A stretch of DNA of 64,000 nucleotides from Selaginella moellendorffii (GCF_000143415.4 NW_003314350.1:248001-312000); one strand, 5' to 3'. Positions 2,234 through 28,001 are shown, counted from the first letter of the stretch. Translations and numbers: made by a program. The notes: generated from the letters alone by a model not told the origin.

Positions 2234-3277
2234 ATGGCTGCAATCGTGTTGATGATTGCGTTTCTCGTGATGGCTGCAGCATGGAAGATGGTGTGTATCC
2301 GCAAGAGAGAAGAGAGGGCACGATTTCTAGCGTCGCTCCACCCCGTGAGAGACGCACACAAGATCTTGTGGTACATGTACTCGGTGGAATTCCCCTTCCT
2401 CTCGCAAAAGGCGCTCGAGTTTGGCACAATCCGCACGCTCGGCATCCCGGGGATCACAAATCTGCTCTTCAAGACCAAGTACGGCCTCAAGGATCCGCAG
2501 AAGCGCGCCGCCGAGACCAACATTCTGGTGAGCGAGATGATCCACCACCACGTCGACAGCGATCGCGGCTCATACGCGGTGAGGAGATTGAATGGAATCC
2601 ACAACAAATTCAAGATCCCAAACGACCAATTCGCCTACGTCCTCTGCCTCAACGTGGTCAGCCCCATTGATTTCTCCGAGAGATTTGGATTCCGCAAGTG
2701 GACCGACAACGAGAAGGAGGCCGCGTATGTTGTGTGGCACGACGTGGGCGTGAGGATGGGCATCACAACCATCCCAGATAGCATTCCAGAGATGCGGGAG
2801 TACATTCGCGATTACGAGGCCAAGAACGCCATCTTCACGGACAAGAACAAGAGCATCGTCCAGGATCTCAAGCATCTGGTGCTGGATGCATTTCCTCGCC
2901 CCGTGCAGCCGCTGGTCGAGACTGGGATCTGTGCACTCATCGATCCCACAATCAGGAGCGCTGTTGGATTGGAAAAGCCTCCAGCAATTGTGGAGTGGAT
3001 CATCTTGGGTGCGTTCAAGCTGCTGGCCGGGAGCTTCGTGTCCGCGTTCTTGCCTCCCAGACGTGTGGAGGATGCAAAGGGCAGCATTGAGGTGGACTGG
3101 TGTCCTAATCCCGCTGCCAATCCGGAAGAGTACCGGCAGCTCAACGTGAATGTGTATCGGCCACCAGCATTCGAGAAGGGATACAAGCTGGCGGAGCTGG
3201 GAGCGCTGAAATCAGGCAAGCTTGGACCATACTACGATGGAGGCTTGCGCTGCCCCTTCCGGCAAATGCACGCATAG
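2234..3277 (+). CDS. MpaB'/rubber-oxygenase (Lcp)-like DUF2236 heme oxygenase with N-terminal membrane anchor, copy 1
   Basis: Intronless 347-aa ORF with a hydrophobic N-terminus. Motifs RTLGIPGITNLL, KRAAET, RRLNGIH, IPNDQFAYVL and W..VG.RMGI..IP match the MpaB/DUF2236 family. TATA box upstream. Confidence 0.88.
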   Translation: MAAIVLMIAFLVMAAAWKMVCIRKREERARFLASLHPVRDAHKILWYMYSVEFPFLSQKALEFGTIRTLGIPGITNLLFKTKYGLKDPQKRAAETNILVSEMIHHHVDSDRGSYAVRRLNGIHNKFKIPNDQFAYVLCLNVVSPIDFSERFGFRKWTDNEKEAAYVVWHDVGVRMGITTIPDSIPEMREYIRDYEAKNAIFTDKNKSIVQDLKHLVLDAFPRPVQPLVETGICALIDPTIRSAVGLEKPPAIVEWIILGAFKLLAGSFVSAFLPPRRVEDAKGSIEVDWCPNPAANPEEYRQLNVNVYRPPAFEKGYKLAELGALKSGKLGPYYDGGLRCPFRQMHA

Positions 3278-3518
3278 CAATAGAACGGGCATAGGACATT
3301 CGTTCGGAGAACCAAGCATCATTTAAAAATGATGAATCTTTTTGTAATTTTTGCAGATAGCACAAAACCATTATTAATAGTACGGGATCCAAACAATTTA
3401 GAAACACAGAGACAAAAATATTGCAGGTTGTAGTTAGAAGTCTAAGTTGACACGCTCGCTTACACCTAAGAGAACGAAAAGCTTGTCAAGCGGAAGGAAT
3501 AAAGATCAAAAGCTTACC

Positions 3519-5763
3519 TCCACGAGAAAACCTCACGTTAATCCATGGGGCTAGCATGCCCACCATCAGGTGCGAACTACCAAACTTTCCTTCGAGTCCA
3601 GCGCCGCACTCACTGGCCAATCAGGGTACCCGAGTACAACTTGAGCTCTCCCACTGAGATGGCTGCAAAGCCGCTTTCAAAGCTCGGCATCCCCCATGCC
3701 TGTTCAAGGCAACAGACTTTAAACACACGACAAAAACTCACCTTGGAGCAACCGGCCAACAGGGTGCGACCCATCCGGAATCGTAATGTCCTCCGATAAC
3801 AAGGATGCTCTCCAGGCTGCAAACTTATCCCGAACCTCCTGCGTGGTGAAGGCGCGTGTGAACTCTTCCGAGATCGGCTCTGTGGGTGAGTCAGGGAACT
3901 AATGCAGAGAAGCTTCAACCAGCTGGTTTCCCTTGACCTGCACATATCCATCGATCTCAGAAATGGCATATCGCCATTCCCTCATGTCCATGGCATACAC
4001 AAAACAAACAGAAATTGATTTCAAAACACGAAACTAGAAACTGGTACATACATGAAGATATGTTGGAGGTCTTGCTTGCTTCCCTAAGCTGGCAGTGATC
4101 CACGTACATGAAAACCTGTACCAGATCTTAGCGCAGATTTCAGATACTAACCAGCTTTACATACCTGTAGCAGATCGCGGTGCTTCACATCAATTCCCAA
4201 TTTTAATGTACGCACATCCAGGATCGAGGTGGTGAACGCTAGAATGCCTGAATGCCAATCAAGCTCGGCCTGTTCCTCCTCAGAGGAGGTGACATCGTTA
4301 GTAGGTTGATCAATGCCATCATGTGGAAACTCCAGGTCCAGAAAAACGGCCTCCTCATCCTGTGCCTCCTCATCCTCCTCCAACTCTAAGCCCATTTCTA
4401 ACTGGAACTCCCCTCACTCTGGTTCCTGCTCATCGTGCTTACACTCTGCCTTGTACAGCATGAAAAGGGCAAATGAACACAAGAGCCTAGAGAAAATGCT
4501 TGCCGGCCCTTGTCTTGGAAAACCAATGTGGCGTACACATCTTTAACCTCCAACTACACGCACGGCGCTCTCCCTCCTGGAAACATCTTTCGATTATACC
4601 TGGAATGTCGAGAAACTTAGACACAAGACAAGGTCGAGAATCCTTACCGATCATAGGGAGGCGTGGCATCTGGTATCTGTTCGATCAGCCCGTACCTCTT
4701 CTTAAATTGCTCTTCAGTAATCTTGCTAGGTGACAGTTGGAATAGTGGTGCTTCTTGCTGTAGCGCTGCGAGTTGTGCTGTGGGAGCAACTCCTTGAGCA
4801 GAGCCCTAATGTGTTCCAAAGACGAACCAAAACCTGCATCCCTCTGTTTCTTATGAGCTGCCCCCCTCCACCTCTTCTGACTTTGGTGCCTCTCTTTTGG
4901 TGATGACGGCATTGCCGTATATGATCGCGGTCACGGACTTGCCCCGAGGATGGGTGATTCCACCTCGATTTTCGATCTGACATTGCTTGCCACAATCTAC
5001 ATGGAATCAAGGAGTTTGAAACAATGCTTCAGCAAACTCTTAAGCTTTTGAAGTTTAGACAAAGTCCATCGAGCTCAAAGAACCTAGACATGAAAGGTTC
5101 TTGGAAGGATAGTGAGAACTTGGATCGCTGTCACAATCTTGCAATCCTTTGAGACTGCCCAGATGTTCGTTTGGGCAGCTCACAGTGTGGAATAAGTCAA
5201 ATATTTGTCACCCAGCTCGTCAGCCAGAGCAACTACCAAACAAGATGGTATTTGAGTGGTCCCAAGGAGACTTGGAACAAGATCTTTCCTAGGAAGTGGT
5301 AGACATCCCTAGATTGCAGGACCTGTGCTGCTACTTTATGCAAGCTTGTACCCTAGAAAGGTGTAATGAACAAACTTAGTATATCTAATATGTGCAATGC
5401 TTCCTTGATATCTTGCTAACACAGTTCGGTTGCTCTTTGCTTGTGAATGGCAGCTTCACAATGCAAAACAAGCACATGCACATGGCCCAGCCTCACAACA
5501 CACTGCAGATGCTAATGTGGAATCTCACTCACAGGAATGTAGAATCCCCAAGGGTGGGGTGGGGTGAGGCTCAGCCTAACCATCACTCCCCATTGCTTCC
5601 CACTTTTATTCTTTAACTTTGAGATTCTCGGGATCTCAAGAAATGATCTTGTCCTCATCCTCAAACACCATAAGTAGTTTGCAATGGTGGCAGCCTCCTT
5701 GCTTGGGCAAAAGTGGCATGAGTTACAAGGAAACATACACTTTTACAGTTTTCTTCTTGGTAA
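3519..5763 (-). pseudogene. Degenerate coding-like sequence of unknown family (repeated in each unit)
   Basis: Coding-like fragments (MREWRYAISEIDGYVQVKGN..., acidic EEDEEAQDEE tract, SPSKITKEQFKKRY...) and a splice donor near 3518. Stops and frameshifts differ between units. Confidence 0.35.
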
Positions 5764-5899
5764 CCTTAGCTTTAAAAGGGGACTCTATTTGAGATCTGTG
5801 ACTCACAAAATAATCTTTATAGATACAAATTTTCAAACATACATCTTGCAATATAATTGAATTAGTACTTGCCCAGCAAATGTTGGGTGAATATAAAAA

Positions 5900-6750
5900 T
5901 AAATTTTATGAGCAAATGTGATAATCAGGCGTTGACTGTCCAAGTCTTGAAGAATGTTGTAAGGCTGTGTTTCTAAATTCAGCACGTGTTTCCACTTTTT
6001 GTGTAACAGCTTAGCCAGAGTAGTTATTTTGGGATCAGGGATTGGTTTATCTTGGTTAATTGTAGCTGAAGGATCTAATCTTGGCTGCTTGCTCTCTCTT
6101 TTCTCCTTGCGGTTCTTTATACTGATGCTACTGTGCCCGTGTCATAACTCTAGATTCTAGTGCAGCTTGTTGGATGAAAATTGCATTGCTTTCTACTTGG
6201 CTTAAGCTTGTGCAAGCAATTGTCCTGCTTGTGGAAGCCTTATGTCTGACAGATGCCACATATAGGCTGGTATTTAATCTGTTTCCTTGGATGCTGGCTC
6301 ATAGCTCATTGTCTGAACTGGAGGAGAAAATGAGTGTTGAAAGAAAACTGGTGCTCAAGCCGAAGATGGTGGTGATGATGGCAAGGTTTTGATGTAACTT
6401 GCATGGATTGCCAGATTTCCTGGCTTGCAAAAATAATCTTCCTAGTGATGATTAATTTGCCGAGAATACTAGCACTTGTCTCAATTCATCACTGGTTGTG
6501 GACACTTATTTGGGTAGTGTCTGTAATTGTTGCATCACATACACTAAATGTTTTTTCGCTACTGTATGGCCTACTTTGTGCCCCTCGAACCCAATTCAAT
6601 TGCAAGTCACTATAGTTGTTGCTAGATTTAGACCTACACTCATTAAAGCTTGCCATTGTTGTTGTTGCTAGCAGCTATAGTCCATCATCCCAAGGCCTAT
6701 TCCAAATATTGTTCCAAATACTATCAATGAGACAAGGAAAGAGAACACAT
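5900..6750 (-). mobile_element. Decayed LTR-retrotransposon gag remnant (unit 1; also ~14160-15000)
   Basis: Minus-strand C-M-*-C-NNYR-H-YPNK-C (CX2CX4HX4C zinc knuckle) at ~6500-6545. Confidence 0.65.
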
Positions 6751-6932
6751 AGAGAGAAAGGAAGGAGTTGTACTAGCTGGTCTTTGCTAAACATTTGCTA
6801 CCTTATGGCTGGAATATCTCTATGTGCCATTATTAGTTCCTATTGACCAACTCCAAAGCTTTCTACTAGCTACACATACATATTTTATATTATAACACAA
6901 TACATTTGCATTTTTATTTATTTTTGTCTTTT

Positions 6933-7227
6933 TTGGTTTGCTTAAGCAAATTTGTAGAGGAACTGTACCTAGAATATGCTTGAATATTCTACCAGTTATT
7001 ATTCATTTAGATTAATCTTGTATTTATTATTTATAAACATGTTTATAATTTATAAACTTGCTTAAACACTTTCTAGTATATTCTTTTTTATTCTACCATC
7101 TAATAGTTGATATGAAATAAGATTAATCTTGTGTTTATAAATTATAAACTTTTATTTGATCAATTGAATTAATAGGTAACACTACTATTAAGAAAACCAA
7201 GCATTGCTACATGAAACGCATAGAAAG
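6933..7227 (+). mobile_element. Helentron/HINE-like (or MITE-like) non-autonomous element, unit 1 copy
   Basis: TTGGTTTGCTTAA ... TTAAGAAAACCAA subterminal IRs, degenerate 3' stem-loop and T-rich flanks; homologous to 40899-41218. Confidence 0.65.
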
Positions 7228-7259
7228 TTTTTTTTTCTAATAACTGATATTCATGTATT

Positions 7260-8600
7260 TACCTCGATTTGAAGGCCATAACTTTAGAGATCCCATTTAC
7301 AGTGGGTGACAAAAGAAAGATGCCTTCTGGATAAGGATTGTCTTTATAGAGTTTGATGGCCATAGATAAATCAGTTGAAGTAAACATTTGAAGAAAGGTG
7401 ATGGCCATCAAGCCATATACACGGTCAATGAGAGCATCATCCATTGTTACGTGCTGTGCTGTCGCTATAAGTGGATATTAACCGGGCATATACACATATA
7501 ACTATGAAAAAGGATGGTCATTGTTGCACTTGATGCAGTGTCCAATCTGCAAGTTAATCCTAGATAGCCAAAATTTGTGGCAAACACACCAGCCAAAGGA
7601 CACAGAGATAGGCAAAAGGAATTAAGCATCCCTTTATCTTAAATGAATAAATATAAGCCATTGAACAAATAAATATGACATACATACCCCATCAAAGTCT
7701 CTTCGATACATAGAAGTTATGGATTTCAAGTGGTCATGAATTGCATTCCATGGTGCTAGTCCAGGCACATTGTAAACTATAGTTGGAGGTCCAATCTTGG
7801 AAACATTATGATCACTTGTTCCTTCAATGTTGTGAAATATTTTGAGTGGCATTTGACGTCCAAACCATTCTGATTTGACTTTATGATACACGAAAGACAT
7901 ACATGCTGCAACTTGAACCGGAGTATGGTAGTTATTATTAACAGCTGTATTGAAAGCTCAAGCATACCTTGTAAATATACTCAAAGTCGTTAGCATGTTT
8001 GTGCTCTACTCATTTAGGTCAACTGAGGAAGTATGCTGCAGCAGTGCAAAATGCTGATCATGTGGCTTCTAGCATGAAATCATGCAAAAGAACCAAGTTG
8101 GATATAGGAATTATATCAAGCATAGGTGGCCTCAGTGGTGGGAACTCACAGACCAGGGAGGAAACAATAATATCAATAAAGGAATAGACCACCAAACATA
8201 TCAGCAACATGTTGAGAAAGAAAATCTGTAGTAATATGAACAATATCATTGAAGTCGACATTGGGGAAGGTGGTAGAGCTAGTTCTCCGCAAGCTGTTGT
8301 AGAAGCCATCATAAGTTCCATAGCGAGATAGGGTGTATAGTAGCAATGGCTGAGCTCCAGATAGCAGTTGCAAGTCAGCAATTTGATCCACTAAGGAGTG
8401 GCCACTGGCTTTGAAAATGCTACTTGTAATAGAACACCACAGATTATCTTGTGATATGTCACTAATGTGACACTTTGCTGTGTCAAAAAATAGTAAGAAA
8501 ATATCACCCAAAAATTGTTTTTTTGCATAATGGTAGCATTGAATCAAAAGTTGAAGTGAAGTAATCCACATGTAGTTTCGTTGTTATAAGAATGTTGTAA
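7260..8600 (-). pseudogene. Degenerate coding-like sequence of unknown family (repeated in full units)
   Basis: Consecutive minus-strand ORF fragments of 61-132 aa, separated by frameshifts or intron-like stretches; no recognisable motif. Confidence 0.25.
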
Positions 8601-10464
8601 GAAACCATGTTAAGAGAAAATCATGTACCTGTTAAAATAGATGCCATCACAGTGATAGGTGTTGCATGGTTGGCATGAAGTGGAACAATGTTAATATTAG
8701 CCAACCCTCCTGCAAGAGTGTTAGATCATGCTATATCAGTTAAAAAGAGACAAACAAAACTTAATAAACATACCACTAATGTCAAGTATGCTATTAGAAG
8801 TTTTGCCAACTAAAATGCAAACTAAAATATCATTTGAAAGCAAAAGTGCAACATACCACTATTGTCAGGAGCACCACTTGAATTTATGTTAGATTTGATT
8901 AATCAAAAAAGTAAAAAATGTCAGTAATGCATACTAGGAATGTTGTGGTGCTTGGTGACAATAGGTTTTGTTACAACACAGTTCACAGCTGCGTCATTAT
9001 TATTCCCAAGCTCAGTGGTTGCTATAGCATTCTTACAATGTTAAAGGAAAGTTTTGGTTATAATGGAAATTATACCTGTGTGTAAGTTCAAGAACTTGTT
9101 ACATATGTCGTCAAGAGTTTGATCTCATGAATGAGACTTGCTATTGTGAACCTCATGAACCTGTGATGTGCTAGAAATGTAGTCAATTACATCGTCACTT
9201 GAAAACAACACTATACTTTCCATTCTTGGTGACAGACAAAAACAAAGAAGAACTTTTGGAATGTTGAAAGCCTAAGAAACATATGGTAAATGAGCCCAAT
9301 GCATGTACTAATATTGACACGTTGCATGGAGGCAACCGCTGCTGTTGCAGAAGAATGATCCAAAGAATCCAAAGAGTAGCAGCCTGATGCATCTCCTTAG
9401 TGCACTCACCGAGATTCTCACCAAATTGGAGAAGCTGAACAAGCTGCTACTTACCATTGAATCAAAGGGCAATTGCTACACCAAACATATATATTAAAAA
9501 AGAGATGTTGGAGCTGTCAACGTGGAAAGCAAGGGAGCAAACTGTAAGGCGTTTTCTATTATGACTTTCCGATTTATGATAAAATATGGCAATTCCAATT
9601 TATTAGAAAGAGTGTCAACCGTTTGTTCCTAGCTTAGGAAACCCCTAACCATGCGCTTGCCATGTTTGGGGACAACATTACTGTTGCAATTACTCTTAAC
9701 CAAGCTTGTGCTGTTAAGCTTCAAGAGACCCTCGTGGTAGTACAGTTACCCAGGTCAACAGCCTCCTTGATGGGCGGCCAGGCCTGAATCCTACAGTGAG
9801 AGCAAAGTCAGGATGATGGCAGGAAAGAAGAACACGAGTTGCTCCATGAAGAATTCCAACCTCAACACCAAATGCATAGAAGTTGATCTATAATAACCAT
9901 GACTTTAAATTGAAAAATAAATAATATAAAAGAAAATAAACTTGACCATATACCTTTTAGAAAATTCTAGATTATTCATTACAATAAAAACACATTATAT
10001 ATTTAAATCTCTTATAAATATGAATAAACCGAAAAACGATATTGTATTATTGAAATTATGTTAGATTAAACTGTATACTAGTTTAAGAGAAACAACAAAA
10101 AAACTTTGGTAAATAACGAATATACTAATTTAAATATAGTTTATCTCTGTAATTAAGGAACCAGAATCCTGTTCTAAACGTGAAACGTTCAAGTTGGTAG
10201 GACCGATAAATTGCATGGACCAGATAACTGTATGGAAAACGTGCACCGTATAAAACAACAAGATTCCTCTCCAAGTATGTGGCTATGTGTGTAACGTACA
10301 GAATACGGATCACACGGAAATAAAAAACGTGAAATGTGATCTCTAATAGCTCTGATAGTATAAAAGACCCTTCTCCAGCCTCTGTTTCCTCAACCCACAG
10401 AGGAGTAGAAAACATTCTCCAATCAAGTTGATCAGATCGATCAAACAGTTTTCACCATTTCGAA

Positions 10465-11508
10465 ATGGCTGCAATCGTGTTGATGATTGCGTTTCTCGTG
10501 ATGGCTGCAGCATGGAAGATGGTGTGTATCCGCAAGAGAGAAGAGAGGGCACGATTTCTAGCGTCGCTCCACCCCGTGAGAGACGCACACAAGATCTTGT
10601 GGTACATGTACTCGGTGGAATTCCCCTTCCTCTCGCAAAAGGCGCTCGAGTTTGGCACAATCCGCACGCTCGGCATCCCGGGGATCACAAATCTGCTCTT
10701 CAAGACCAAGTACGGCCTCAAGGATCCGCAGAAGCGCGCCGCCGAGACCAACATTCTGGTGAGCGAGATGATCCACCACCACGTCGACAGCGATCGCGGC
10801 TCATACGCGGTGAGGAGATTGAATGGAATCCACAACAAATTCAAGATCCCAAACGACCAATTCGCCTACGTCCTCTGCCTCAACGTGGTCAGCCCCATTG
10901 ATTTCTCCGAGAGATTTGGATTCCGCAAGTGGACCGACAACGAGAAGGAGGCCGCGTATGTTGTGTGGCACGACGTGGGCGTGAGGATGGGCATCACAAC
11001 CATCCCAGATAGCATTCCAGAGATGCGGGAGTACATTCGCGATTACGAGGCCAAGAACGCCATCTTCACGGACAAGAACAAGAGCATCGTCCAGGATCTC
11101 AAGCATCTGGTGCTGGATGCATTTCCTCGCCCCGTGCAGCCGCTGGTCGAGACTGGGATCTGTGCACTCATCGATCCCACAATCAGGAGCGCTGTTGGAT
11201 TGGAAAAGCCTCCAGCAATTGTGGAGTGGATCATCTTGGGTGCGTTCAAGCTGCTGGCCGGGAGCTCCGTCTCCGCGTTCTTGCCTCCCAGACGTGTGGA
11301 GGACGCAAAGGGCAGCATTGAGGTGGACTGGTGTCCTAATCCCGCTGCCAATCCGGAAGAGTACCGGCAGCTCAACGTGAATGTGTATCGGCCACCAGCA
11401 TTCGAGAAGGGATACAAGCTGGCGGAGCTGGGAGCGCTGAAATCAGGCAAGCTTGGACCATACTACTATGGAGGCTTGCGCTGCCCCTTCCGGCAAATGC
11501 ACGCATAG
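10465..11508 (+). CDS. MpaB'/Lcp-like DUF2236 oxygenase, copy 2
   Basis: Same ORF as copy 1 except F268S and D335Y. Confidence 0.88.
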   Translation: MAAIVLMIAFLVMAAAWKMVCIRKREERARFLASLHPVRDAHKILWYMYSVEFPFLSQKALEFGTIRTLGIPGITNLLFKTKYGLKDPQKRAAETNILVSEMIHHHVDSDRGSYAVRRLNGIHNKFKIPNDQFAYVLCLNVVSPIDFSERFGFRKWTDNEKEAAYVVWHDVGVRMGITTIPDSIPEMREYIRDYEAKNAIFTDKNKSIVQDLKHLVLDAFPRPVQPLVETGICALIDPTIRSAVGLEKPPAIVEWIILGAFKLLAGSSVSAFLPPRRVEDAKGSIEVDWCPNPAANPEEYRQLNVNVYRPPAFEKGYKLAELGALKSGKLGPYYYGGLRCPFRQMHA

Positions 11509-14500
11509 AAATAGAACGGGCATAGGACATTCGTTCGGAGAACAAAGCATCATTTGAAAATGCGTAGTTTACGTGAATCTTTTTGTAATTTTTGCAGAAC
11601 AATATGGGATCCAAACAATTTAGAAACACGCTCTGGCTAAAGACAATGATTCTAAGATATTACAGGCTGTAGTTAGAAGTCTAAGTTGACACGCTCACTT
11701 TACACCTAAGAGAAGGAAAAGCTTGTCAAGAGGAAGGAACAAAGGTCAAAAGCTTACCTCCACGAGAAAACCTCACGTTAATCCATGGGGCCTCAGCACG
11801 GCCCATGCCCACCATCAGGTGCGAACTGCCAAACTTTCCTTGGAGTCCAGCGCCGCACTCGCTGGCCAATCAGGATACCCGACTACAACTTGAGCTCTCC
11901 CACTGAGATGGCTTTGAAAGCTCGGCATCCCCCATGCCTGTTCAAGGCAACAGACTCTAAACACACGAACAAAACTCACCTTGGCACGTTGAAGGCAAAA
12001 GACTTTAAACACACGACAAAAACTCACCTTGGAGCAGTAGTACAACCGGCCAACAGGGTGCAACCCATCCGGAATCGTAAGGTCCTTCGATAACAAGGAT
12101 GCTCTCCAGGCTGCAAACTTATCCCGAACCTCCTGCTTGGTGAAGGCCTCTTCCGATATCGGCTCTCTGGGTGAGTCAGGGAACGAATGCAGGGAAGCTT
12201 CAACCAGCTGGTTTCCCTTGACCTGCACATATCCATCGATCTCAGAAATGGCATATCGCCATTCCCTCATGTCCATGGCGTACAGAAAACAAACAGAAAT
12301 TGATTTCAAAACACGAAACTAGAAACTGGTACATACATGAAGATATGTTGGAGGTCTTGCTTGCTTCCCTAAGCTGGCAGTGATCCACGTACATGAAAAC
12401 CTGTACCAGATCTTAGCGCAGATTTCAGATACTAACCAGCTTTACATACCTGTAGCAGATCGCGGTGCTTCACATCAATTCCCAATCTTAGTGTACGCAC
12501 ATCCAGGATCGAGGTGGTGAACGCTAGAATGCCTGAATGCCAATCAAGCTCGGCCTGTTCCTCCTCAGAGGAGGTGACATCGTTAGTAGGTTGATCAATG
12601 CCATCATGTGGAAACTCCAGGTCCAGAAAAACGGCCTCCTCATCCTGTGCCTCCTCATCCTCCTCCAACTCTAAGCCCATTTCTAACTGGAACTCCCCCC
12701 ACTCTGGTTCCTGCTCATCGTGTTTACACTCTGCCTTGTACAGCATGAAAAGGGCAAATGAACACAAGAGCCTAGAGAAAATGCTTGCCGGCCCTTGTCT
12801 TGGAAAACCAATGTGGCGTACACATCTTTAACCTCCAACTACACGCACGGCGCTCTCCCTCCTGGAAACATCTTTCGATTATACCTGGAATGTCGAGAAA
12901 CTTAGACACAAGACAAGGTCGAGAATCCTTACCGATCATAGGGAGGCGTGGCATCTGGTATCTGTTCGATCAGCCCGTACCATTGCTCTTCAGTAATCTT
13001 GCTAGGTGACAGTTGGAATAGTGGTGCTTCTTGCTGTAGCGCTGCGAGTTGTGCTGTGGGAGCAACTCCTTGAGCAGAGCCCTAATGTGTTCCAAAGACG
13101 AACCAAAACCTGCATCCCTGTTTCTTATGAGCTGCCCCCCTCCACCTCTTCTGACTTTGGTGCCTCTCTTTTGGTGATGACGGCATTGCCGTATATGATC
13201 GCGGTCACGGACTTGCCCCGAGGATGGGTGATTCCACCTCGATTTTCGATCTGACATTGCTTGCCACAATCTACATGGAATCAAGGAGTTTGAAACAATG
13301 CTTCAGCAAACTCTTAAGCTTTTGAAGTTTAGACAAAGTCCATCGAGCTCAAAGAACCTAGACATGAAAGGTTCTTGGAAGGATAGTGAGAACTTGGATC
13401 ACTGTCACAATCTTGCAATCCTTTGAGACTGCCCAGATGTTCGTTTGGGCAGCTCACAGTGTGGAATAAGTCCAGCTCGTCAGCCAGAGCAACTACCAAA
13501 CAAGATGGTATTTGAGTGGTCCCAAGGAGACTTGGAACAAGATCTTTCCTAGGAAGTGGTAGACATCCCTAGATTGCAGGAGCTGTGCTGCTACTTTATG
13601 CAAGCTTGTACCCTAGAAAGGTGTAATGAACAAACTTAGTATATCTAATATGTGCAATGCTTCCTTGATATCTTGCTAACACAGTTAGGTTGCTCTTTGC
13701 TTGTGAATGGCAGCTTCACAATGCAAAACAAGCACATGCACATGGCCCAGCCTCACAACACTGCAGATGCTAATGTGGAATCTCACTCACAGGAATGTAG
13801 AATCCCCAAGGGTGGGGTGGGGTGAGGCTCAGCCTAACCATCACTCCCATTGCTTCCCACTTTTATTCTTTAACTCTGAGATTCTCGGGATCTCAAGAAA
13901 TGATCTTGTCCTCATCCTCAAACACCATAAGTAGTTTGCAATGGTGGCAGCCTCCTTGCTTGGGCATAAGTGGCATGAGTTACAAGGAAACATACACTTC
14001 TACAGTTTTCTTATTGGTAACTTTAGCTTTAAAAGGGGACTCTGTTTGAGATCTGTGACTCACAAAATAATCTTTATAGATACAAATTTTCAAACATACA
14101 TCTTGCAATATAATTGAATTAGTACTTGCCCAGCAAATGTTGGATGAATATAAAAATAAATTTTATGAGCGAATGTGATAATCAGGTGTTGACTGTCCAA
14201 GTCTTGAAGAATGTTGTAAGGCTGTGTTTCTAAATTCAGCACGTGTTTCCACTTTTTATGTAACAGCTTAGCCAGAGTAGTTATTTTGGGATCAGGGATT
14301 GGTTTATCTTGGTTAATTGTAGTTGAAGGATCTAATCTTGGCTGCTTGCTCTCTCTTTTCTCCTTGCGGTTCTTTATACTGATGCTACTGTGCCCGTGTC
14401 ATAACTCTAGATTCTAGTGCAGCTTGTTGGATGAAAATTGCATTGCTTTCTACTTGGCTTAAGCTTGTGCAAGCAATTGTCCTGCTTGTGGAAGCCTTAT

Positions 14501-15191
14501 GTCTGACAGATGCCACATATAGGCTGGTATTTAATCTGTTTCCTTGGATGCTGGCTCATAGCTCATTGTCTAAACTGGAGGAGAAAAAATGGGTGTTGAA
14601 AGAAAACTGGTGCTCAAGCCGAAGATGGTGGTGATGATGGCAAGGTTTTGATGTAACTTGCATGGATTGCCAGATTTCCTGGCTTGCAAAAATAATCTTC
14701 CTAGTGATGATTAATTTGCCGACAATACTAGCACTTGTCTCAATTCATCACTGGTTGTGGACACTTATTTGGGTAGTGTCTGTAATTGTTGCATCACATA
14801 CACTAGATGTTTTTTCGCTACTGTATGGCCTACTTTGTGCCCCTCGAACCCAATTCAATTGCAAGTCACTATAGTTGTTGCTAGATTTAGACCTACACTC
14901 ATTAAAGCTTGCCATTGTTGTTGTTGCTGGCAGCTATAGTCCATCATCCCAAGGCCTATTCCAAATATTGTTCCAAATACTAACAATGAGACAAGGAAAG
15001 AGAACACATAGAGAGAAAGGAAGGAGTTGTACTAGCTGGTCTTTGCTAACCATTTGCTACCTTATGGCTGGAATATCTCTATGTGCCATTATTAGTTCCT
15101 ATTGACCAACTCCAAAGCTTTCTACTAGCTACACATACATATTTTATATTATAACACAATACATTTGCATTTTTATTTATTTTTGTTTTTT

Positions 15192-18769: not shown

Positions 18770-19813
18770 ATGGCTGCAATCGTGTTGATGATTGCGTTTC
18801 TCGTGATGGCTGCAGCATGGAAGATGGTGTGTATCCGCAAGAGAGAAGAGAGGGCACGATTTCTAGCGTCGCTCCACCCCGTGAGAGACGCATACAAGAT
18901 CTTGTGGTACATGTACTCGGTGGAATTCCCCTTCCTCTCGCAAAAGGCGCTCGAGTTTGGCACAATCCGCACGCTCGGCATCCCGGGGATCACAAATCTG
19001 CTCTTCAAGACCAAGTACGGCCTCAAGGATCCGCAGAAGCGCGCCGCCGAGACCAACATTCTGGTGAGCGAGATGATCCACCACCACGTCGACAGCGATC
19101 GCGGCTCATACGCGGTGAGGAGATTGAATGGAATCCACAACAAATTCAAGATCCCAAACGACCAATTCGCCTACGTCCTCTGCCTCAACGTGGTCAGCCC
19201 CATTGATTTCTCCGAGAGATTTGGATTCCGCAAGTGGACCGACAGCGAGAAGGAGGCCGCGTATGTTGTGTGGCACGACGTGGGCGTGAGGATGGGCATC
19301 ACAACCATCCCAGATGGCATTCCAGAGATGCGGGAGTACATTCGCGATTACGAGGCCAAGAACGCCATCTTCACGGACAAGAACAAGAGCATCGTCCAGG
19401 ATCTCAAGCATCTGGTGCTGGATGCATTTCCTCGCCCCGTGCAGCCGCTGGTCGAGACTGGGATCTGTGCACTCATCGATCCCACAATCAGGAGCGCTGT
19501 TGGATTGGAAAAGCCTCCAGCAATTGTGGAGTGGATCATCTTGGGTGCGTTCAAGCTGCTGGCCGGGAGCTTCGTGTCCGCGTTCTTGCCTCCCAGACGT
19601 GTGGAGGATGCAAAGCGCAGCATTGAGGTGGACTGGTGTCCTAATCCCGCTGCCAATCCGGAAGAGTACCGGCAGCTCAACGTGAATGTGTATCGGCCAC
19701 CGGCATTTGAGAAGGGATACAAGCTGGCGGAGCTGGGAGCGCTGAAATCAGGCAAGCTTGGACCATACTACGATGGAGGCTTGCGCTGCCCCTTCCGGCA
19801 AATGCACGCATAG
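18770..19813 (+). CDS. MpaB'/Lcp-like DUF2236 oxygenase, copy 3
   Basis: Same ORF as copy 1 except H42Y, N159S, S183G and G283R. Confidence 0.88.
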   Translation: MAAIVLMIAFLVMAAAWKMVCIRKREERARFLASLHPVRDAYKILWYMYSVEFPFLSQKALEFGTIRTLGIPGITNLLFKTKYGLKDPQKRAAETNILVSEMIHHHVDSDRGSYAVRRLNGIHNKFKIPNDQFAYVLCLNVVSPIDFSERFGFRKWTDSEKEAAYVVWHDVGVRMGITTIPDGIPEMREYIRDYEAKNAIFTDKNKSIVQDLKHLVLDAFPRPVQPLVETGICALIDPTIRSAVGLEKPPAIVEWIILGAFKLLAGSFVSAFLPPRRVEDAKRSIEVDWCPNPAANPEEYRQLNVNVYRPPAFEKGYKLAELGALKSGKLGPYYDGGLRCPFRQMHA

Positions 19814-22319
19814 AAATAGAACGGGCATAGGACATTCGTTCGGAGAACAAAGCATCATTTGAAAATGCGTTGTTTACGTGAATCTTTTTGTAATTTTTGC
19901 AGAACAATATGGGATCCAAACAATTTAGAAACACGCTTTGGCTAAAGACAATGATTCTAAGATATTACAGGTTGTAGTTAGAAGTCTAAGTTGACACGCT
20001 CACTTTACACCTAAGAGAAGGAAAAGCTTGTCAAGCGAAAGGAACAAAGGTCAAAAGCTTACCTCCACGAGAAAACCTCACGTTAATCCATGGGGCCTCA
20101 GCACGGCGCATGCCCACCATCAGGTGCGAACTGCCAAACTTTCCTTGGAGTCCAGCGCCGCACTCGCTGGCCAATCAGGATACCCGAGTACAACTTGAGC
20201 TCTCCCACTGAGATGGCTGCAAAGCCGCTTTCAAAGCTCGGCATCCCCTGTTCAAGGCAACAGACTCTAAACACACGAACAAAACTCACCTTGGCACCAT
20301 GCCTGTTCAAGGCAAAAGACTTTAAACACACAACAAAAACTCACCTTGGAGCAGTAGTACAACCGGCCAACAAGGTGCAACCCATCCGGAATCGTAAGGT
20401 CCTTCGATAACAAGGATGCTCTCCAGGCTGCAAACTTATCCCGAACCTCCTGCTTGGTGAAGGCCTCTTCCGATATCCGCTCTCTGGGTGAGTCAGGGAG
20501 CGAATGCAGAGAAGCTTCAACCAGCTGGTTTCCTTTGACCTGCACATATCCATCGATCTCAGAAATGGCATATCGCCATTCCCTCATGTCCATGGCATAC
20601 AGAAAACAAACAGAAATTGATTTCAAAACACGAAACTAGAAACTGGTACATACATGAAGATATGTTGGAGGTCTTGCTTGCTTCCCTAAGCTGGCAGTGA
20701 TCCACGTACATGAAAACCTGTACCAGATCTTAACGCAGATTTCAGATACTAACCAGCTTTACATAGCAGGTCGCGGTGCTTCACATCAGTTCCCAATTTT
20801 AGTGTACGCACATCCAGGATCGGAATGCCAATCAAGCCCTCCTCAGAGGAGGTGACATCGTTAGTAGGTTGATCAATGCCATCATGTGGAAACTCCAGGT
20901 CCAGAAAAACGGCCTCCTCATCCTGTGCCTCCTCATCCTCCTCCAACTCTAAGCCCATTTCTAACTGGAACTGCCGCCACTCTGGTTCTTGCTCATCGTG
21001 CTTACACTCTGCCTTGTACAGCATGAAAAGGGCAAATGAACACAAGAGCCTAGAGAAAATGCTTGCTGGCCCTTGTCTTGGAAAACCAATGTGGTATACA
21101 CATCTTTAACCTCCAACTACACGCACGGCGCTCTCCCTTCCTGGAAACATCTTTCGATTATACCTGGAATGTCGACACAAGACGAGGTCAAGAATCCTTA
21201 CCGATCATAGGGAGGCGTGGCATCTGGGATCTGTTCGATCAGCCCGTACCTCTTCTTAAATTGCTCTTCAGTGATCTTGCTAGGTGACACTTGGAATAGT
21301 GGTGCTTCTTGCTGTAGCGCTGCGAGTTGTGCTGTGGGAGCAAGTCCTTGAGCAGAGCCCTAAGGTGTTCCAAAGACGAACCAAAACCTGCATCCCTCTG
21401 TTTCTTATGAGCTGCCCCCCTCCACCTCTTCTGACTTTGGTGCCTCTCTTTTGGTGATGACGGCATTGCCGTATATGATCGAGGTCACGGACTTGCTCCG
21501 AGGATGGGTGATTCCACCTCGATTTTCGATCTGACATTGCTTGCCTGGAATCAAGGAGTTTGAAACAATGCTTTAGCAAACTCTTAAGCTTTTGAAGTTT
21601 AGACAAAGTCCATTGAGCTCATAGACATGAAAGGTTCTGGGAAGGATAGTGAGAACTTGGATCACTGTCACAATCCTTCAATCCTTTGAGACAGTGTGGA
21701 ATAAGTCAAATATTTGTCACCCAGCCCGTCACCCAGAGCAACTACCAAACAACAAAGAGTTTTGGAATAAGATCTTTCCTAGGAAGTGGTGGACATCCCT
21801 AGATTGCAAGAGTTGTGTTGCTGCTTTATGCAAGTTTGTACTACCCTAGAAGGGTGTAATGAATAAAATTAGTATATCTAACATGTGCAATGCTTCCCTG
21901 ATCTCTTGTTAATACAACCCGGTTGCTCTTTGCTTGCTAATGGCAGCCTCACAATGCAAAACAAGCACATGCACATGACCCAGCCTCACAACACACTGCA
22001 GATGCTGATGTGGAATTGCTTCCCACTTTTATTCTGTAGCTTTGAGATTCTTGGGATCTCAAGAAATGATCTTATCCTCATCCTCAAACACCATAAGTAA
22101 TTTGCAATGGTGGCAGCTTCCTTGCTTGGGCAAAAGTGGCATGAGTTACAAGGAAACATACACTTCTACAGTTTTCTTATTGGTAACCTTAGCTTTAAAA
22201 GGGGACTCTGTTTGAGATCTATGACTCACAAAATAATCTTTATTTTCAAACATACATCTTGCAATATAATTGAATTAGTACTTGCCCAGCAAATGCTGGA
22301 TGAATATAAAAATAAATTT

Positions 22320-23230
22320 TATACACCTAAGTGAGAGCTGAGCAAATGTGATATTCAGGCGTTGGCTGTCCAAGTCTTGAAAAATGTTGTAGGGCTGTGT
22401 TTCTAGATTCAGCACATGTTTCCACTTTTTGTGTAAAAGCTTAGCCAAGGTAGTTATTTTGGCATTAGAGACTTGTTTATCTTGGTTAATTGTAGTGGGA
22501 GGATCTAATCTTGGCTGCTCACTCTCTCTTTTCTCCTTGCGGTTTTTTCTTGCAATTTTCTTTAGGTCTTCCTCCTCCTCAACATCATCAAGTACAGAGT
22601 TCTTCCTCCTCCTCAACATCATGAAATACAGAGTTCTCCATATGCTAATGCTGTTGTGCCCATGTCATAACTCTAGATTTTGGTGCAGCTTGTTGGATGA
22701 AAATTGCATTGCTTTCTGCTTGGCTTAAGCTTGTGCAGGCAATTGTCCTGCTTATGCAAGCCTTGTGTCTGATAGATTCCACATATAAGCTGGTACCTAA
22801 TCTGTTTCCTCGGATGCTGGCTTGTAGCTCATTGTCTGAACTGGAGGAGAAAATGGGTGTTGAAAGAAAATTGGTGCTCAAGCCGAAGATGGCGGTGATG
22901 ACAGCAAGGTCTTGATGTAACTTGTAGAAGATCTCCTGGCTTGTAAAAATAATCTTCCCAGTGATGATTAGTTTGCCGACAATACTGGCACTTGTCTCAA
23001 TTCATCACTGGTTGTGGACACTCATTTGGGTAGTGTGTGTAATTGTTGCATCACACACACTAGATGTCTTTTTGCTACTGCACGGCCTACTTTGTGCCCC
23101 TCGGACCCAATTCAATTGCAAGTCACTATAGTTGTTGCTGGATTTGGACCTACACTCATTAAAGCTTGCCATTGTTGTTGTTACTGGCAGCTATAGTCCA
23201 TCATCCCAAGGCATATTCCAAATATTGTTC
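22320..23230 (-). mobile_element. Decayed LTR-retrotransposon gag remnant (unit 3, least deleted copy)
   Basis: C-V-*-C-NNYT-H-YPNE-C knuckle at ~23018-23059, followed by PYNIFQDLDSQRLNITFAQL, which resembles the pre-protease region of Gypsy gag. Confidence 0.68.
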
Positions 23231-23440
23231 CAAATACTAACAATGAGACAAGGAGAGAGAACACATAGAGAGAAAGGAAGGAGTTGTACTAGCTGGTTTT
23301 TGCTAAACATTTGCTACCTTATGGCTGGAATATCTCTATGTGCCATTGTTAGTTACTGTTGACCAACTCCAAAGCTTTCTACTAGCTACACACACATTTT
23401 ATATTATAACACAACACAGTTGCATTTTTTTGTCTTTTTC

Positions 23441-23740
23441 TGGTTTGCTTAAGCAAATTTGCAGAGAACCTGGGATGGTAGTGAATATACCCAGAATATT
23501 CTTGGATATTCTAATAGTCTTAGATTAATCTTGTATTTATTATTTATAAACATGTTTATAATTTATAAACTTGCTTAAACACTTTCTAGTATATTCTTTT
23601 TTATTCTACCATCTAATAGTTGATATGAAATAAGATTAATCTTGTGTTTATAAATTATAAACTTTTATTTGATCAATTGAATTAATAGGTAACACTACTA
23701 TTAAGAAAACCAAGCATTGCTACATGAAACGCATAGAAAG
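23441..23740 (+). mobile_element. Helentron/HINE-like element, unit 3 copy
   Basis: Same termini as 6933-7227. Confidence 0.65.
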
Positions 23741-26700
23741 TTTTTTTTTCTAATAACTGATATTGATGTATTTACCTCGGTTTGAAGGCCATAACTTTAG
23801 AGATCCCATTTACAGTGGCTGACAAAAGAAAGCGGCCTTCTGGATAAGGATTGTCTTTACAGAGTTCGATGGCCATAGATAAATCAGTTGAAGTAAACAT
23901 TTGAAGAAAGGTGATAGCCATCAAGCCATATACACGGTCAATGAGAGCATCATCCATTGTTACGTGCTGTGTTGAGTTGCTATAAGTAGATATCAACTGG
24001 CCATGTACACATATAACCATGAAAAAAGGATGGTCATTGTTTCACTAGATGCAGTGTCCAATCTGCAAGTTAATCCTAGATAGCTAAAATTTGTGGCAAA
24101 CACACCAGCCCAAGGACACAGAGATGTCTCGAGAGGCAAAAGGAATTAAGCATCCCTTTATCTTAAATGAATAAATATAAGCCATTGAACAAATAAATAT
24201 GACATACATACCCCATCAAAGTCTCTTCGATACATAGAATTTATGGATTTCAAGTGGTCATGAATTGCATTCCATGGTGCTAGTCCAGGCACATTGTAAA
24301 CTATAGTTGGAGGTCCAATCTTGGAAGTATTATGATCACTTGTTCCTTCGATGTTGTGAAATATTTTGAGTGGCATTTGACGTCCAAACCATTCTGATTT
24401 GACTTTATGATACACGAAAGACATACATGCTGCAACTTGAACTGGAGTATGGTAGTTATTATTAACAGCTGTATTGAAAGCTCAAGCATACCTTGTAAAT
24501 ATACTCAAAGTCGTAAGCATGTTTGTGCTCTGCTCATTTAGGTCAACTGAGGAAGTATGCTGCAGCAGTGCAAAATGCTGATCATGTGGCTTCTAGCATG
24601 AAATCATGCAAAAGAACCAAGTTGGATATAGGAATTATATCAAGCATAGGTGGCCTCAGTGGTGGGAACTCACAGACCAGGGAGGAAACAATAATATCAA
24701 TAAAGGAATAGACCACCAAACATATCAGCAACATGTTGAGAAAGAAAATCTGTAGTAATATGAACAATATCATTGAAGTCGACATTGGGGAAGGTGGTAG
24801 AGCTAGTTCTCCGCAAGCTGTTGCAGAAGCCATCATAAGTTCCATAGCGAGATAGGGTGTATAGTAGCAATGGCTGAGCTCCAGATAGCAGTTGCAAGTC
24901 AGCAATTTGATCCACTAAGGAGTGGCCACTGGCTTTGAAAATGCTACTTGTAATAGAACACCACAGATTATCTTGTGATATATCACTAATGTGACGCTTT
25001 GCTGTGTCAAAAAGTAGTAAGAAAATATCACCCAAAAAATGTTTTGTTACATAGTGGTAGCATTGAATCAAAAGTTGAAGTGAAGTAATCCACATGTAAT
25101 TTCGTAAGAATGTTGTAAGAAACCATGTTAAGAGAAAACCATGTACCTGTTGAAATAGATGCCATCACAGTGGTAGGTGTTGCATGGTTGGCATGAAATA
25201 AACATACCACTAATGTCAAGTATGCTATTAGAACTTTTGCCAACTAAAATGCAAATTAAAATATCATTTGAAAGCAAAAGTGTAGCATACCACTATTGTT
25301 AGGAGCACCACTTGACTTTACGTTAAATTTGATTAATCAAAATAGCAAAAAATGTCGGTAATGCATACTAGGAATGTTGTGGTGCTTGGTGATAGTAGGT
25401 TTTTTTGCAAGACAGTTCACAGCTGCGTCATTATTATTCCCAAGCTCAGTGGTTGCTATAGCATTCTTACAATGTTAAAAGAAAGTTTTGATTATAATGG
25501 AAACTATACCTGGGTGTAAGTTCAAGAACTTGTTACATACGTCGTCAAGAGTTTGATCTGATGAATGAGACTTGCTATTGTGAACCTCCTGAACTTGTGA
25601 TGTGCTAGAAATGTAGTCAACTGCATCATCACTTGAAGACGACAGACTAAAACAAAGAAGAACTTTTGGAATGTTGAAAGCCTAAGAAATATATGGTAAA
25701 TGGGCCCAATGCATGTACTAATATTGACACATTGCATGGAGGCAGCTGCTACTGTTGCAGAAGAATGATCCGAACAATCCAAAGAGTAGCAGCAGCAACA
25801 CTGCAGCCTGATGCATCTCCTTAGTGCACTCACCCAGATTCTCACCAAATTGGAGAAGCTGAACAAGCTGCTGCTTACCGTTGAATCAAAGGGCAATTGC
25901 TACACCACACATATATATTAAAAAAGAGATGTTGGAGCTGTCAACGTGGAAAGCAAGGAAGCAAACTGTAAGGCTTTTTCTATTATGACTTTCCGATTTA
26001 TGATAAGATATGGCAATTCCAATTTATTAGAAAGAGTGTGAACCGTTTGTTCCTAGCTTAGTAAACCCCTAACCATGCGCTTGCCATGTTTGGGGACAAC
26101 ATCAATTACTCTTAACCAAGCTTGTGCTGTTAGGCTTCAAGAGACCCTCGTGGTAGTAAGAAGCTGCTAAATCACATCAAGTCACAGTTACCCAATGTCC
26201 AGGTCAACAGTCTCCTTGATGGGCGGCCAGGCCTGAATCGAGCTTCACCCTCGAGCAGCCCACTCCATGGATCTAGCTGCCAGTGATGTCATCCATCCGG
26301 CATGGCCGCTCCAAGAGCTTTACACCAAATGCATAGAAGTTGATCTATAATAACCATGACTTTAAATTGAAAAATAAATAATATAAAAGAAAATGAAGTT
26401 GACCATATACCTTTTAGAAAATTCTACATTATTCATTACAATAAAAATACATTATTTATTTAAATCTCTTATAAATATGAATAAGCAGAGAAACCATACT
26501 GTATTATATGGTATTTCTTGAAATTATGCTAGATTAAACTGTATACTAGTTTAAGAGAAACAACCAAAAAAACTTTGGTACATAACGAATATACTAATTT
26601 AAATATAGTTTATGGTTTCTACTGCGTCTTTTGTGAAATCTGTAATAAAGGAACCAGAATCCAGTTCTAAACGTGAAACGTTCAAGTTGGTAGGACCGAT

Positions 26701-26957
26701 AAATTGCATGGACCAGATAACTGTATGGAAAACGTGCAGCGTATAGAACAACAAGATTTCTCTCCAAGTATGTGGCTATGTGTGTAACGTACAGAATACA
26801 GATCACACGGAAATAAAAAACGTGAAATGTGATCTCTAATAGCTCTGATAGTATAAAAGACCCTTCTCCAGCCTCTGTTTCCTCAACCCACAGAGGAGTA
26901 GAAAACATTCTCCAATCAAGTTGATCAGATCGATCAAACAGTTTTCACCATTTCGAA

Positions 26958-28001
26958 ATGGCTGCAATCGTGTTGATGACTGTGTTTCTCGTGATGGCTG
27001 CAGCTTGGAAGATGGTGTGTATCCGCAAGAGAGAAGAGAGGGCACGATTTCTAGCGTCGCTCCACCCCGTGAGAGACGCACACAAGATCTTGTGGTACAT
27101 GTACTCGGTGGAATTCCCTTTCCTCTCGCAAAAGGCGCTCGAGTTTGGCACAATCCGCACGCTCGGCATCCCGGGGATCACAAATCTGCTCTTCAAGACC
27201 AAGTACGGCCTCAAGGATCCGCAGAAGCGCGCCGCCGAGACCAACATTCTGGTGAGCGAGATGATCCACCACCACGTCGACAGCGATCGCGGCTCATACG
27301 CGGTGAGGAGATTGAATGGAATCCACAACAAATTCAAGATCCCAAACGACCAATTCGCCTACGTCCTCTGCCTCAACGTGGTCAGCCCCATTGATTTCTC
27401 CGAGAGATTTGGATTCCGCAAGTGGACCGACAACGAGAAGGAGGCCGCGTATGTTGTGTGGCACGACGTGGGCGTGAGGATGGGCATCACAACCATCCCA
27501 GATAGCATTCCAGAGATGCGGGAGTACATTCGCGATTACGAGGCCAAGAACGCCATCTTCACGGACAAGAACAAGAGCATCGTCCAGGATCTCAAGCATC
27601 TGGTGCTGGATGCATTTCCTCGCCCCGTGCAGCCGCTGGTCGAGACTGGGATCTGTGCACTCATCGATCCCACAATCAGGAGCGCTGTTGGATTGGAAAA
27701 GCCTCCAGCAATTGTGGAGTGGATCATCTTGGGTGCGTTCAAGCTGCTGGCCGGGAGCTTCGTGTCCGCGTTCTTGCCTCCCAGACGTGTGGAGGATGCA
27801 AAGGGCAGCATTGAGGTGGACTGGTGTCCTAATCCCGCTGCCAATCCGGAAGAGTACCGGCAGCTCAACGTGAATGTGTATCGGCCACCGGCATTTGAGA
27901 AGGGATACAAGCTGGCGGAGCTGGGAGCGCTGAAATCAGGCAAGCTTGGACCATACTACGATGGAGGCTTGCGCTGCCCCTTCCGGCAAATGCACGCATA
28001 G
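26958..28001 (+). CDS. MpaB'/Lcp-like DUF2236 oxygenase, copy 4
   Basis: Same ORF as copy 1 except I8T and A9V. Confidence 0.88.
   Translation: MAAIVLMTVFLVMAAAWKMVCIRKREERARFLASLHPVRDAHKILWYMYSVEFPFLSQKALEFGTIRTLGIPGITNLLFKTKYGLKDPQKRAAETNILVSEMIHHHVDSDRGSYAVRRLNGIHNKFKIPNDQFAYVLCLNVVSPIDFSERFGFRKWTDNEKEAAYVVWHDVGVRMGITTIPDSIPEMREYIRDYEAKNAIFTDKNKSIVQDLKHLVLDAFPRPVQPLVETGICALIDPTIRSAVGLEKPPAIVEWIILGAFKLLAGSFVSAFLPPRRVEDAKGSIEVDWCPNPAANPEEYRQLNVNVYRPPAFEKGYKLAELGALKSGKLGPYYDGGLRCPFRQMHA

Follow-up and report, generated by a model that had tools for sequence, protein, structure and literature searches.

How does a lycophyte come to carry, one behind the other, several intronless and GC-rich genes of an oxygenase family whose members in public databases are mostly fungal and bacterial? 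The question is raised by a 64,000-nucleotide (nt) stretch of the Selaginella moellendorffii genome (hereafter, the window), which matches scaffold GL377654.1 letter for letter at ~248,001-312,000 and holds four nearly identical, intact genes for a 347-amino-acid (aa) protein of the MpaB/Lcp family. An earlier account of this DNA (the sequence-only reading) had taken the gene for a microbial type, possibly acquired by horizontal transfer. Here, we describe a real, well-defined tandem array of an uncharacterised plant MpaB-type oxygenase, already machine-annotated, and we argue for a different origin: it is quite probable that the array derives from a native plant gene, which was inherited vertically, lost its intron and was tandemly amplified in Selaginella, and that it encodes a putative alkene-cleaving heme oxygenase anchored in the endoplasmic reticulum (ER).

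The array consists of head-to-tail units of ~8.2 kb each (ATG-to-ATG distances of 8231, 8305 and 8188 bp; Table 1), and its right edge lies near 30552, where self-BLAST homology to the other units stops. The four 347-aa open reading frames (ORFs) are 98.9-99.4% identical, and their coding sequences (CDS) differ by 4-10 nt per pair over 1044 nt, with zero indels; outside the genes, the units are 89-97% identical, and each self-BLAST alignment there contains from dozens to more than 100 gap positions. The sequence-only reading had described just this pattern of four nearly identical intact genes, tandemly amplified, with a protected CDS between indel-rich flanks, and ORF calling, self-BLAST and a four-way alignment agree with it; the CDS is indeed uninterrupted and GC-rich as well (GC 0.557, with 0.73 at third codon positions (GC3), against 0.43 for the whole window). 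The array also reaches beyond the window. On GL377654.1, an intact copy lies upstream, with its ATG 4158 nt before that of copy 1, and above it the end of one further copy is found, so that the array holds at least five intact copies (four in the window and at least one upstream). The 90%-identity protein cluster of the window gene comprises 22 distinct sequences, and the window protein is 99% identical to S. moellendorffii LOC112349549 at NCBI. In their head-to-tail units, near-identical coding regions and decaying spacers, the genes resemble plant specialised-metabolism tandem arrays; unlike those, this array is linked to no metabolite, pathway partner or phenotype. Full units have an AT-rich middle of ~4 kb (5200-9250 in the window, and its counterparts in units 2 and 3; GC 0.33-0.41), in which no recognisable ORF was found and which the shorter unit directly before the window (4.16 kb from ATG to ATG) lacks; this stretch may be an insertion carried along by later duplications. 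No inverted repeats or transposable-element termini were found inside a unit.

Within each unit, the gene is part of a larger uniform block. The four-way alignment delimits a gap-free segment that reaches, counted from the ATG, from about -318 to about +1081. Mean pairwise substitutions are 0.25-1.8% within it and 2-12% in the flanks, which also have many gap columns. Its upstream part, from about -318 to the ATG, has zero gap columns and 1-2% substitutions among the four copies, and within it a TATAAAAG motif is located at 2128-2135, which is 106 nt upstream of the start codon of copy 1. That this 1.4-kb promoter-plus-CDS block stays near-identical while the rest of the unit decays points to purifying selection on a working gene. 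Gene conversion probably helps to keep the block uniform, as suggested by a synonymous divergence lower than that of most of the spacer; if so, the term 'recently amplified', used in the sequence-only reading, may overstate what the divergence shows.

Membership of the MpaB/Lcp family is borne out both by sequence profiles and by structure. Pfam family PF09995 (MPAB_Lcp_cat, formerly DUF2236) matches residues 86-251 with 48.8 bits against a cut-off of 23 (E 1.3e-12), and an exhaustive protein search returned 1199 homologues at E<=0.001; a search of the ESM Atlas led to the same family again, in fungal clusters, and an NCBIfam scan of the window protein gave no match. The AlphaFold2 model, built on 94 homologues, has a mean predicted local distance difference test score (pLDDT) of 93.7. 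Among solved proteins, its best match in structure and in sequence alike is trans-anethole oxygenase (TAO) of Stenotrophomonas maltophilia (8S1J): Foldseek gives template modelling (TM) scores of 0.62/0.71 with a probability of 1.0, VIA-align gives Z 25.3 over 280 residues (3.0 A) next to Z 17.6 for Lcp (5O1M) and ~8 for ordinary globins, and the profile of the 94 homologues matches TAO at E 2.2e-19, with the R..DT and N.IH motifs aligned. As modelled, the protein is an all-alpha, globin-fold member of the MpaB/Lcp/trans-anethole-oxygenase family, and by analogy it is probably a heme-dependent oxygenase, as yet uncharacterised.

The residues on which catalysis depends in characterised relatives have counterparts here. 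The heme of Lcp is ligated on its proximal side by H198, and activity requires both R164 and T168 (PMC5522427). The sequence-only reading had equated these with H123, R91 and T95 of the window protein, and the match holds up: across the 94 sequences, R91 and H123 are invariant and T95 is more than 90% conserved, these positions align with the TAO motifs, and the amino-acid differences between the array copies leave all three untouched (4/4 copies). The 13 closest sequences share R91, E101, R111, R118, N120 and H123 without exception. In PgMpaB, the residues for which an essential or important role is reported (R125, E135, R145, R152 and H157; PMC6900556) are spaced exactly as R91, E101, R111, R118 and H123 of the window protein, with a constant offset of 34, a correspondence of spacing only, as PgMpaB was not aligned. 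The Lcp distal ligand Lys167 is not conserved, being replaced by Glu94 in the window protein and by Asp in most relatives and in TAO.

The characterised enzymes resemble the plant protein in some respects and differ from it in others. TAO shares with it the R..(D/E)T and N.IH motifs and, as in most of the family, an acidic residue rather than Lys before the conserved Thr; it is, however, just 19-20% identical, and, as a soluble enzyme from a bacterium, lacks both the predicted N-terminal anchor and the C-terminal extension (window residues ~280-347). Its substrates are aryl-propenes, which are at most candidates for the plant protein. Lcp of Streptomyces sp. K30 (5O1L/5O1M) has the globin-like core and the three equivalent residues in common with the window protein, but at 12-15% identity; this bacterial enzyme is secreted, has additional domains at both termini and acts on extracellular polyisoprene. 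Fungal MpaB and MpaB', ER-bound oxygenases that cleave a farnesyl side chain in the mycophenolic acid pathway, belong to the same Pfam family as the window protein, are of similar length and have the eukaryotic architecture with an N-terminal membrane anchor, predicted in the case of the plant protein; yet the chytrid, which is the one named fungus in our trees, falls outside the plant clade, and a mycophenolate-type cluster (polyketide synthase, prenyltransferase) is not seen beside the window genes.

Evidence on the origin of the gene comes from its plant relatives. In the exhaustive search, ferns (Adiantum, Ceratopteris) are closest after Selaginella, at 36-42% identity, followed by chytrid, environmental, protist and bacterial sequences, and the nearest non-plant proteins are just 30-35% identical. 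How much of the plant family comes into view depends on the query: a word-indexed search with a single protein found three proteins only, a profile of 13 mixed sequences retrieved mostly metagenome proteins, and the gymnosperm and further fern members emerged only with a profile of the plant clade. The latter recovered at least seven genes of Adiantum nelumboides, two of A. capillus-veneris, a fourth gene of Ceratopteris richardii, and members in Ginkgo biloba and Pinus taeda. In both of two maximum-likelihood trees, the plant sequences fall together in a single clade (support 100/99 and 97/95), within which gymnosperms, Selaginella (100/100) and ferns each make up a supported subclade. The protists and the chytrid lie outside it in both trees, as do the bacterial sequences of the first tree, the only one to include any. 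Support for the sister group of the plant clade is weak, at 50-89.

Gene structure is decisive: these plant genes share an intron that the window genes lack. A paralogue in the same genome (P0002, on GL377594.1), 69% identical to the window gene, with a synonymous divergence (dS) of 1.37 and a ratio of non-synonymous to synonymous divergence (dN/dS) of 0.17, has a 98-nt GT-AG phase-2 intron (L001:10456-10553). In the same alignment column, phase-2 GT-AG introns are found in an Adiantum gene (P0004; 85 nt, L002:8465-8549) and in three short contigs that were found via split gene calls: L003 of the Selaginella clade (741-903, 163 nt), L004 of the gymnosperm clade (526-608, 83 nt) and L005 on the fern side (3468-3632, 165 nt). 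The shared intron falls at the codon aligned to R150 of the window protein, where the window genes are uninterrupted; the Batrachochytrium gene has its single intron elsewhere, in phase 0, after residue 199. Lycophytes, ferns and gymnosperms thus have in common a distinct clade of the family, whose ancestral gene had one phase-2 intron. Because five plant-clade genes share this intron, the intronless state of the window genes is a secondary loss, and because L003 branches outside the pair formed by the window gene and P0002, the loss falls on the window-gene branch. One intron loss on that branch would be the simplest history of the gene.

How the plant clade came by the gene can nevertheless be read in more than one way. 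A recent acquisition from a fungus or a bacterium, followed by amplification in Selaginella, is very improbable. Its appeal lies in the missing intron, in the fungal and bacterial bulk of the family, and in the want of any angiosperm or bryophyte homologue in searches that were non-exhaustive for these groups; the nearest relatives, however, are fern and gymnosperm genes, united with the window gene in one plant clade (support 97-100) rather than leaving it nested in a donor group, and the nearest non-plant proteins reach just the 30-35% identity given above. Neither structure nor composition is foreign: the ancestral plant gene has the phase-2 intron, which the same-genome paralogue and four other plant-clade genes retain at one codon, and GC3 in the window genes (0.73) is below that of the native paralogue (0.81). 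Saturated synonymous divergence from this paralogue implies a very long residence of the gene, which also counts against recent transfer. The sequence-only reading had itself named orthologues inherited vertically across land plants as grounds for giving up horizontal transfer; the homologues of lycophytes, ferns and gymnosperms largely answer to this, and recent transfer is thereby refuted. The idea of a microbial-type gene, marked as foreign by its GC richness and lack of introns, is not supported. A much older transfer, from a protist or an early fungus into the ancestor of vascular plants, with the intron gained afterwards, the gene lost in angiosperms and the array arising by later, native amplification, would be in line with members being found only in lycophytes, ferns and gymnosperms, with the position of the plant clade among patchy protist, chytrid and environmental sequences (Pharyngomonas, Phalansterium, Salpingoeca, Hemiselmis, Batrachochytrium), and with a plant intron that the chytrid gene does not share. 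An old eukaryotic gene with many losses fits equally, though, the sister group of the plant clade is poorly placed, and the bryophyte and algal absence rests on non-exhaustive searches. We regard the ancient transfer as unlikely, if worth keeping in view, and the data do not separate it from the old gene with many losses. Rather doubtful, too, is a scenario that extends it, in which the plant clade of membrane-anchored oxygenases goes back to a single such uptake by the ancestor of vascular plants and was then recruited, and in Selaginella massively amplified, for an alkene-cleaving step of specialised metabolism lost in flowering plants.

Other alternatives concern the array itself. The copies might not be recent at all: in an older array, the 1.4-kb block could have been homogenised by repeated gene conversion, and the low divergence would then not date the amplification. 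This is a live possibility, somewhat short of an even prospect. Synonymous divergence among the CDS (dS 0.009-0.026) is below the substitution divergence of most flanks (0.02-0.12), the edges of the uniform block, at about -318 and about +1081, are sharp, and the differences between copies yield no clear tree, copy 1 being nearest to all others; on the other hand, the counts are small (2-6 synonymous differences per pair), indel-rich flank alignments inflate the apparent substitutions, and some flank segments are likewise just 1.4-2% diverged. That the four copies are an assembly artefact, namely haplotypes or mis-joined reads of one or two genes, is scarcely credible. The public S. moellendorffii assembly does contain both haplotypes, an N gap lies beside the fifth copy described below, and copy number is not derivable from the DNA contigs of run X3. 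Against this, the units stand in series on one gap-free 30-kb stretch and differ by many indels and by 3-11% in their flanks, and are therefore distinct sequences; in addition, both alleles at copy-distinguishing sites occur in independent runs, and the 90% cluster holds the 22 protein variants mentioned above.

Several observations do not sit easily with a native, intron-stripped and working gene. The gene tree differs from the species tree, in that gymnosperms are sister to Selaginella plus ferns (support only 91-93/81-82), and the stem branch of Selaginella is long, at ~1 change per site. Searches that were not exhaustive for bryophytes, green algae and angiosperms turned up no homologue in any of them, so that the distribution is patchy and leaves room for more than one ultimate origin. 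There is no A-tract after the stop codon, and no poly(A) remnant or target-site duplication was seen, for which reason retroposition is only one way to explain the loss of the intron; such missing marks do not exclude it, since at a dS of 1.37 to the paralogue they would have decayed. The dN/dS values among the copies (0.14-0.87) are imprecise, resting on so few substitutions. Finally, two raw RNA-seq runs (each ~12% sampled) gave zero reads on the oxygenase CDS, and for the runs in which the CDS is present, an RNA origin is no more than a guess.

For all these reservations, we consider a native gene with a secondarily lost intron the better account, and its history can be traced as follows. 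A duplication within the Selaginella lineage produced two daughters, one of which kept the intron (the paralogue on GL377594.1), while the other lost it. The loss would have come about by retroposition or by recombination with cDNA; in keeping with a retrocopy, the intron is gone at a locus other than the parent's, the parent-type paralogue being on another scaffold. Unequal crossing-over could later have multiplied the intronless gene in units of ~8.2 kb, and the amplification may have brought a gain in dosage.

What the enzyme does can be outlined by homology. Residues 2-22 contain the most hydrophobic 19-residue stretch (Kyte-Doolittle mean 2.5), modelled as a helix and followed by RKREER. 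A hydrophobic N-terminal helix is present in plant, chytrid and protist relatives too; bacterial-type homologues, mostly 270-330 aa long, align only from query residue ~25-50 and so appear to be without this segment. Of the ER anchoring proposed in the sequence-only reading, the hydrophobic N-terminus is borne out as a putative anchor, and the ER as its location is suggested by analogy with MpaB', which was localised there (bioRxiv 10.1101/524025). In the mechanism we envisage, the helix would anchor the protein in the ER membrane, heme b would be bound via His123 with Arg91 and Thr95 on the distal side, and O2 would be used to cleave a C=C bond of a lipophilic substrate into carbonyl products. 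Candidate substrates are a prenyl or polyprenyl chain, as in MpaB' and Lcp, or an aryl-propenyl group, as in TAO; no class is preferred, because aryl-propenes are the substrates of the nearest relative with a solved structure, and a farnesyl chain is that of the nearest precedent among eukaryotes. The cleavage of isoprenoids, and a role in defence or specialised metabolism, as put forward in the sequence-only reading, are possibilities at most, and the solved structure nearest to the model is that of an aryl-alkene oxygenase (TAO), not of Lcp.

No paper characterising a plant member of DUF2236, PF09995 or MpaB came up in full-text searches; one preprint notes in passing a Selaginella transcript from 1KP (the 1000 Plants transcriptome project) similar to an S. 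moellendorffii 'mycophenolic acid synthesis protein'. Our results remove an attractive but wrong case of microbe-to-plant transfer, and they illustrate that a missing intron in a microbial-looking family is weak evidence on its own, as here the intron was lost. In its place stands a lycophyte-fern-gymnosperm clade of MpaB/TAO/Lcp-like oxygenases that has been tandem-duplicated repeatedly and for which flowering plants yielded no member. The chemistry of the family, heme-dependent C=C cleavage, is unusual, and a plant member could account for a cleavage reaction, so far unassigned, in vascular plants that do not flower, or find use in biocatalysis. Local duplication of MpaB-type genes recurs in unrelated eukaryotes: at least four genes are present in Ceratopteris richardii, three of them adjacent (KP509_24G042500 to 042700), and in the chytrid Batrachochytrium dendrobatidis (L006, DS022304.1) two genes lie side by side at 1501-2620 and 3176-4112.

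Expression of the oxygenase is likely and probably tissue- or condition-specific, though not proven. Transcriptome-size contig sets from ~8 studies, whose RNA nature is only guessed, hold 47-100% of the sequence words of the CDS. In one of the presumed RNA runs (X15), contigs cover the CDS of copy 4 from ATG to stop, and both alleles at 27896 are present, so that more than one copy is represented. The ends of these contigs at the ATG and the stop could suggest a cloned CDS; this was rejected, as single-nucleotide polymorphisms at 26957 and 28002, which distinguish copy 1 from copies 2-4, break the contigs.

A second transcribed element, convergent with the oxygenase gene and downstream of it, occurs in every unit, with minus-strand equivalents near 3.4-4.9 kb, 11.7-13.1 kb and 20.0-21.4 kb. 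In the array, the RNA reads of X22 and X23 fall only on the segment listed in Table 1, with the first mate always on the plus strand, and a read joint 29281>29353 with the ends CT..AC corresponds to a minus-strand GT-AG intron. Small minus-strand genes of 129 and 151 aa are annotated at equivalent places on GL377654.1, and the ORFs of the element contain no Pfam domain. Because the X22 and X23 reads are mostly 95-99% alike, the expressed copy probably belongs to another unit or cluster.

A fifth, relic copy had also been claimed in the sequence-only reading. A partial copy does exist; it sits at 57441-57824, far outside the range of 2234-28001 in which it had been placed. Compared with copy 1, it has an in-frame loss of 8 residues (PVRDAHKI), a dS of 0.19 and a dN/dS of 0.40, and its native upstream region is replaced by an AT-rich repeat. 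The surrounding locus (57152-58336) is scrambled, with pieces of the region upstream of the units in plus orientation (57152-57300 and 58198-58336) and inverted (57958-58164) around an assembly gap, which may be either a real rearrangement or a mis-join. The fifth copy looks like a rearranged, decaying fragment, a judgement that the 100-N gap keeps from certainty.

Three further MpaB-type genes make up a second cluster on GL377605.1 (L008; 261711-282754), which adjoins strictosidine-synthase-like and alpha/beta-hydrolase genes; one of the three is in forward and two are in inverted orientation, and one has only 321 aa. Window positions 55095-57300 are 84.6% like the alpha/beta-hydrolase region that precedes an intact copy in this cluster, and the family has therefore spread by segmental duplication as well; the level of likeness points to an old event.

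Table 1. Features of the oxygenase array and of the fifth-copy locus, in window coordinates
Feature	Coordinates	Strand	Evidence and remarks
Tail of preceding array unit	1-1003	+	95-96% identical to 4159-5169 and 12444-13443 (self-BLAST)
Conserved upstream block of copy 1, putative promoter and 5' untranslated region (5'UTR)	1916-2233	+	Four-way alignment
MpaB/Lcp-family gene copy 1, 347 aa, intronless, intact	2234-3277	+	ORF; PF09995; exact protein annotated on GL377654.1
MpaB/Lcp-family gene copy 2, 347 aa, intact	10465-11508	+	ORF; vs copy 1: F268S, D337Y
MpaB/Lcp-family gene copy 3, 347 aa, intact	18770-19813	+	ORF; vs copy 1: H42Y, N158S, S183G, G285R
MpaB/Lcp-family gene copy 4, 347 aa, intact	26958-28001	+	ORF; vs copy 1: I8T, A9V
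Rest of last array unit	28002-30552	+	Self-BLAST: 18020-21609 matches 26199-29796; 5113-5763 matches 29889-30552
Second transcribed element, in every unit, convergent, downstream of oxygenase gene	28173-29551	-	RNA reads X22, X23; one GT-AG intron, 29282-29352
Fifth, partial copy, codons 1-136 only	57441-57824	+	87% nucleotide, 79% protein identity
100-N assembly gap	57858-57957		Fifth-copy homology ends 34 nt before gap
Inverted piece of unit promoter/5'UTR region, = 2197 back to 1971 of unit 1	57958-58164	-	~90% identity, reverse orientation, all four units

The neighbours in the window are the convergent small gene of each unit, Ty3/gypsy pieces, a methyltransferase and a matrixin, and those of the two clusters together form no recognisable pathway cluster. 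At 51238-52323 (minus strand) lies an intact, intronless matrix-metalloproteinase gene (PG_binding_1 and Peptidase_M10, E 1e-43), an ordinary plant gene that supports a native genomic context; the paralogue P0002 is surrounded by genes for a glucanase, a GDSL lipase, a leucine-rich-repeat receptor kinase and a CPSF_A (cleavage and polyadenylation factor A-type) protein. Contamination was considered and rejected, as the scaffold and the paralogue locus both carry ordinary plant genes. An ORF with a class I S-adenosylmethionine-dependent methyltransferase domain (Methyltransf_12, E 1.6e-8) at 49315-50007 on the plus strand is probably one exon of a larger gene, and a 756-aa ORF at 59575-61845 on the minus strand has no Pfam match at E<=0.01. 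Pieces of a Ty3/gypsy retrotransposon (reverse transcriptase-RNase H and an integrase zinc-binding domain) at 36374-37789 lie in several frames, and the element is therefore broken. Just beyond the array, at 30537-32300, the contigs of DNA run X3 reach a summed depth of 35,000-88,000 in most bins, against ~1,000-15,000 over the array, which identifies this segment as a high-copy genomic repeat; it overlaps one arm of a 77% inverted repeat (30912-31533 vs 33784-33157).

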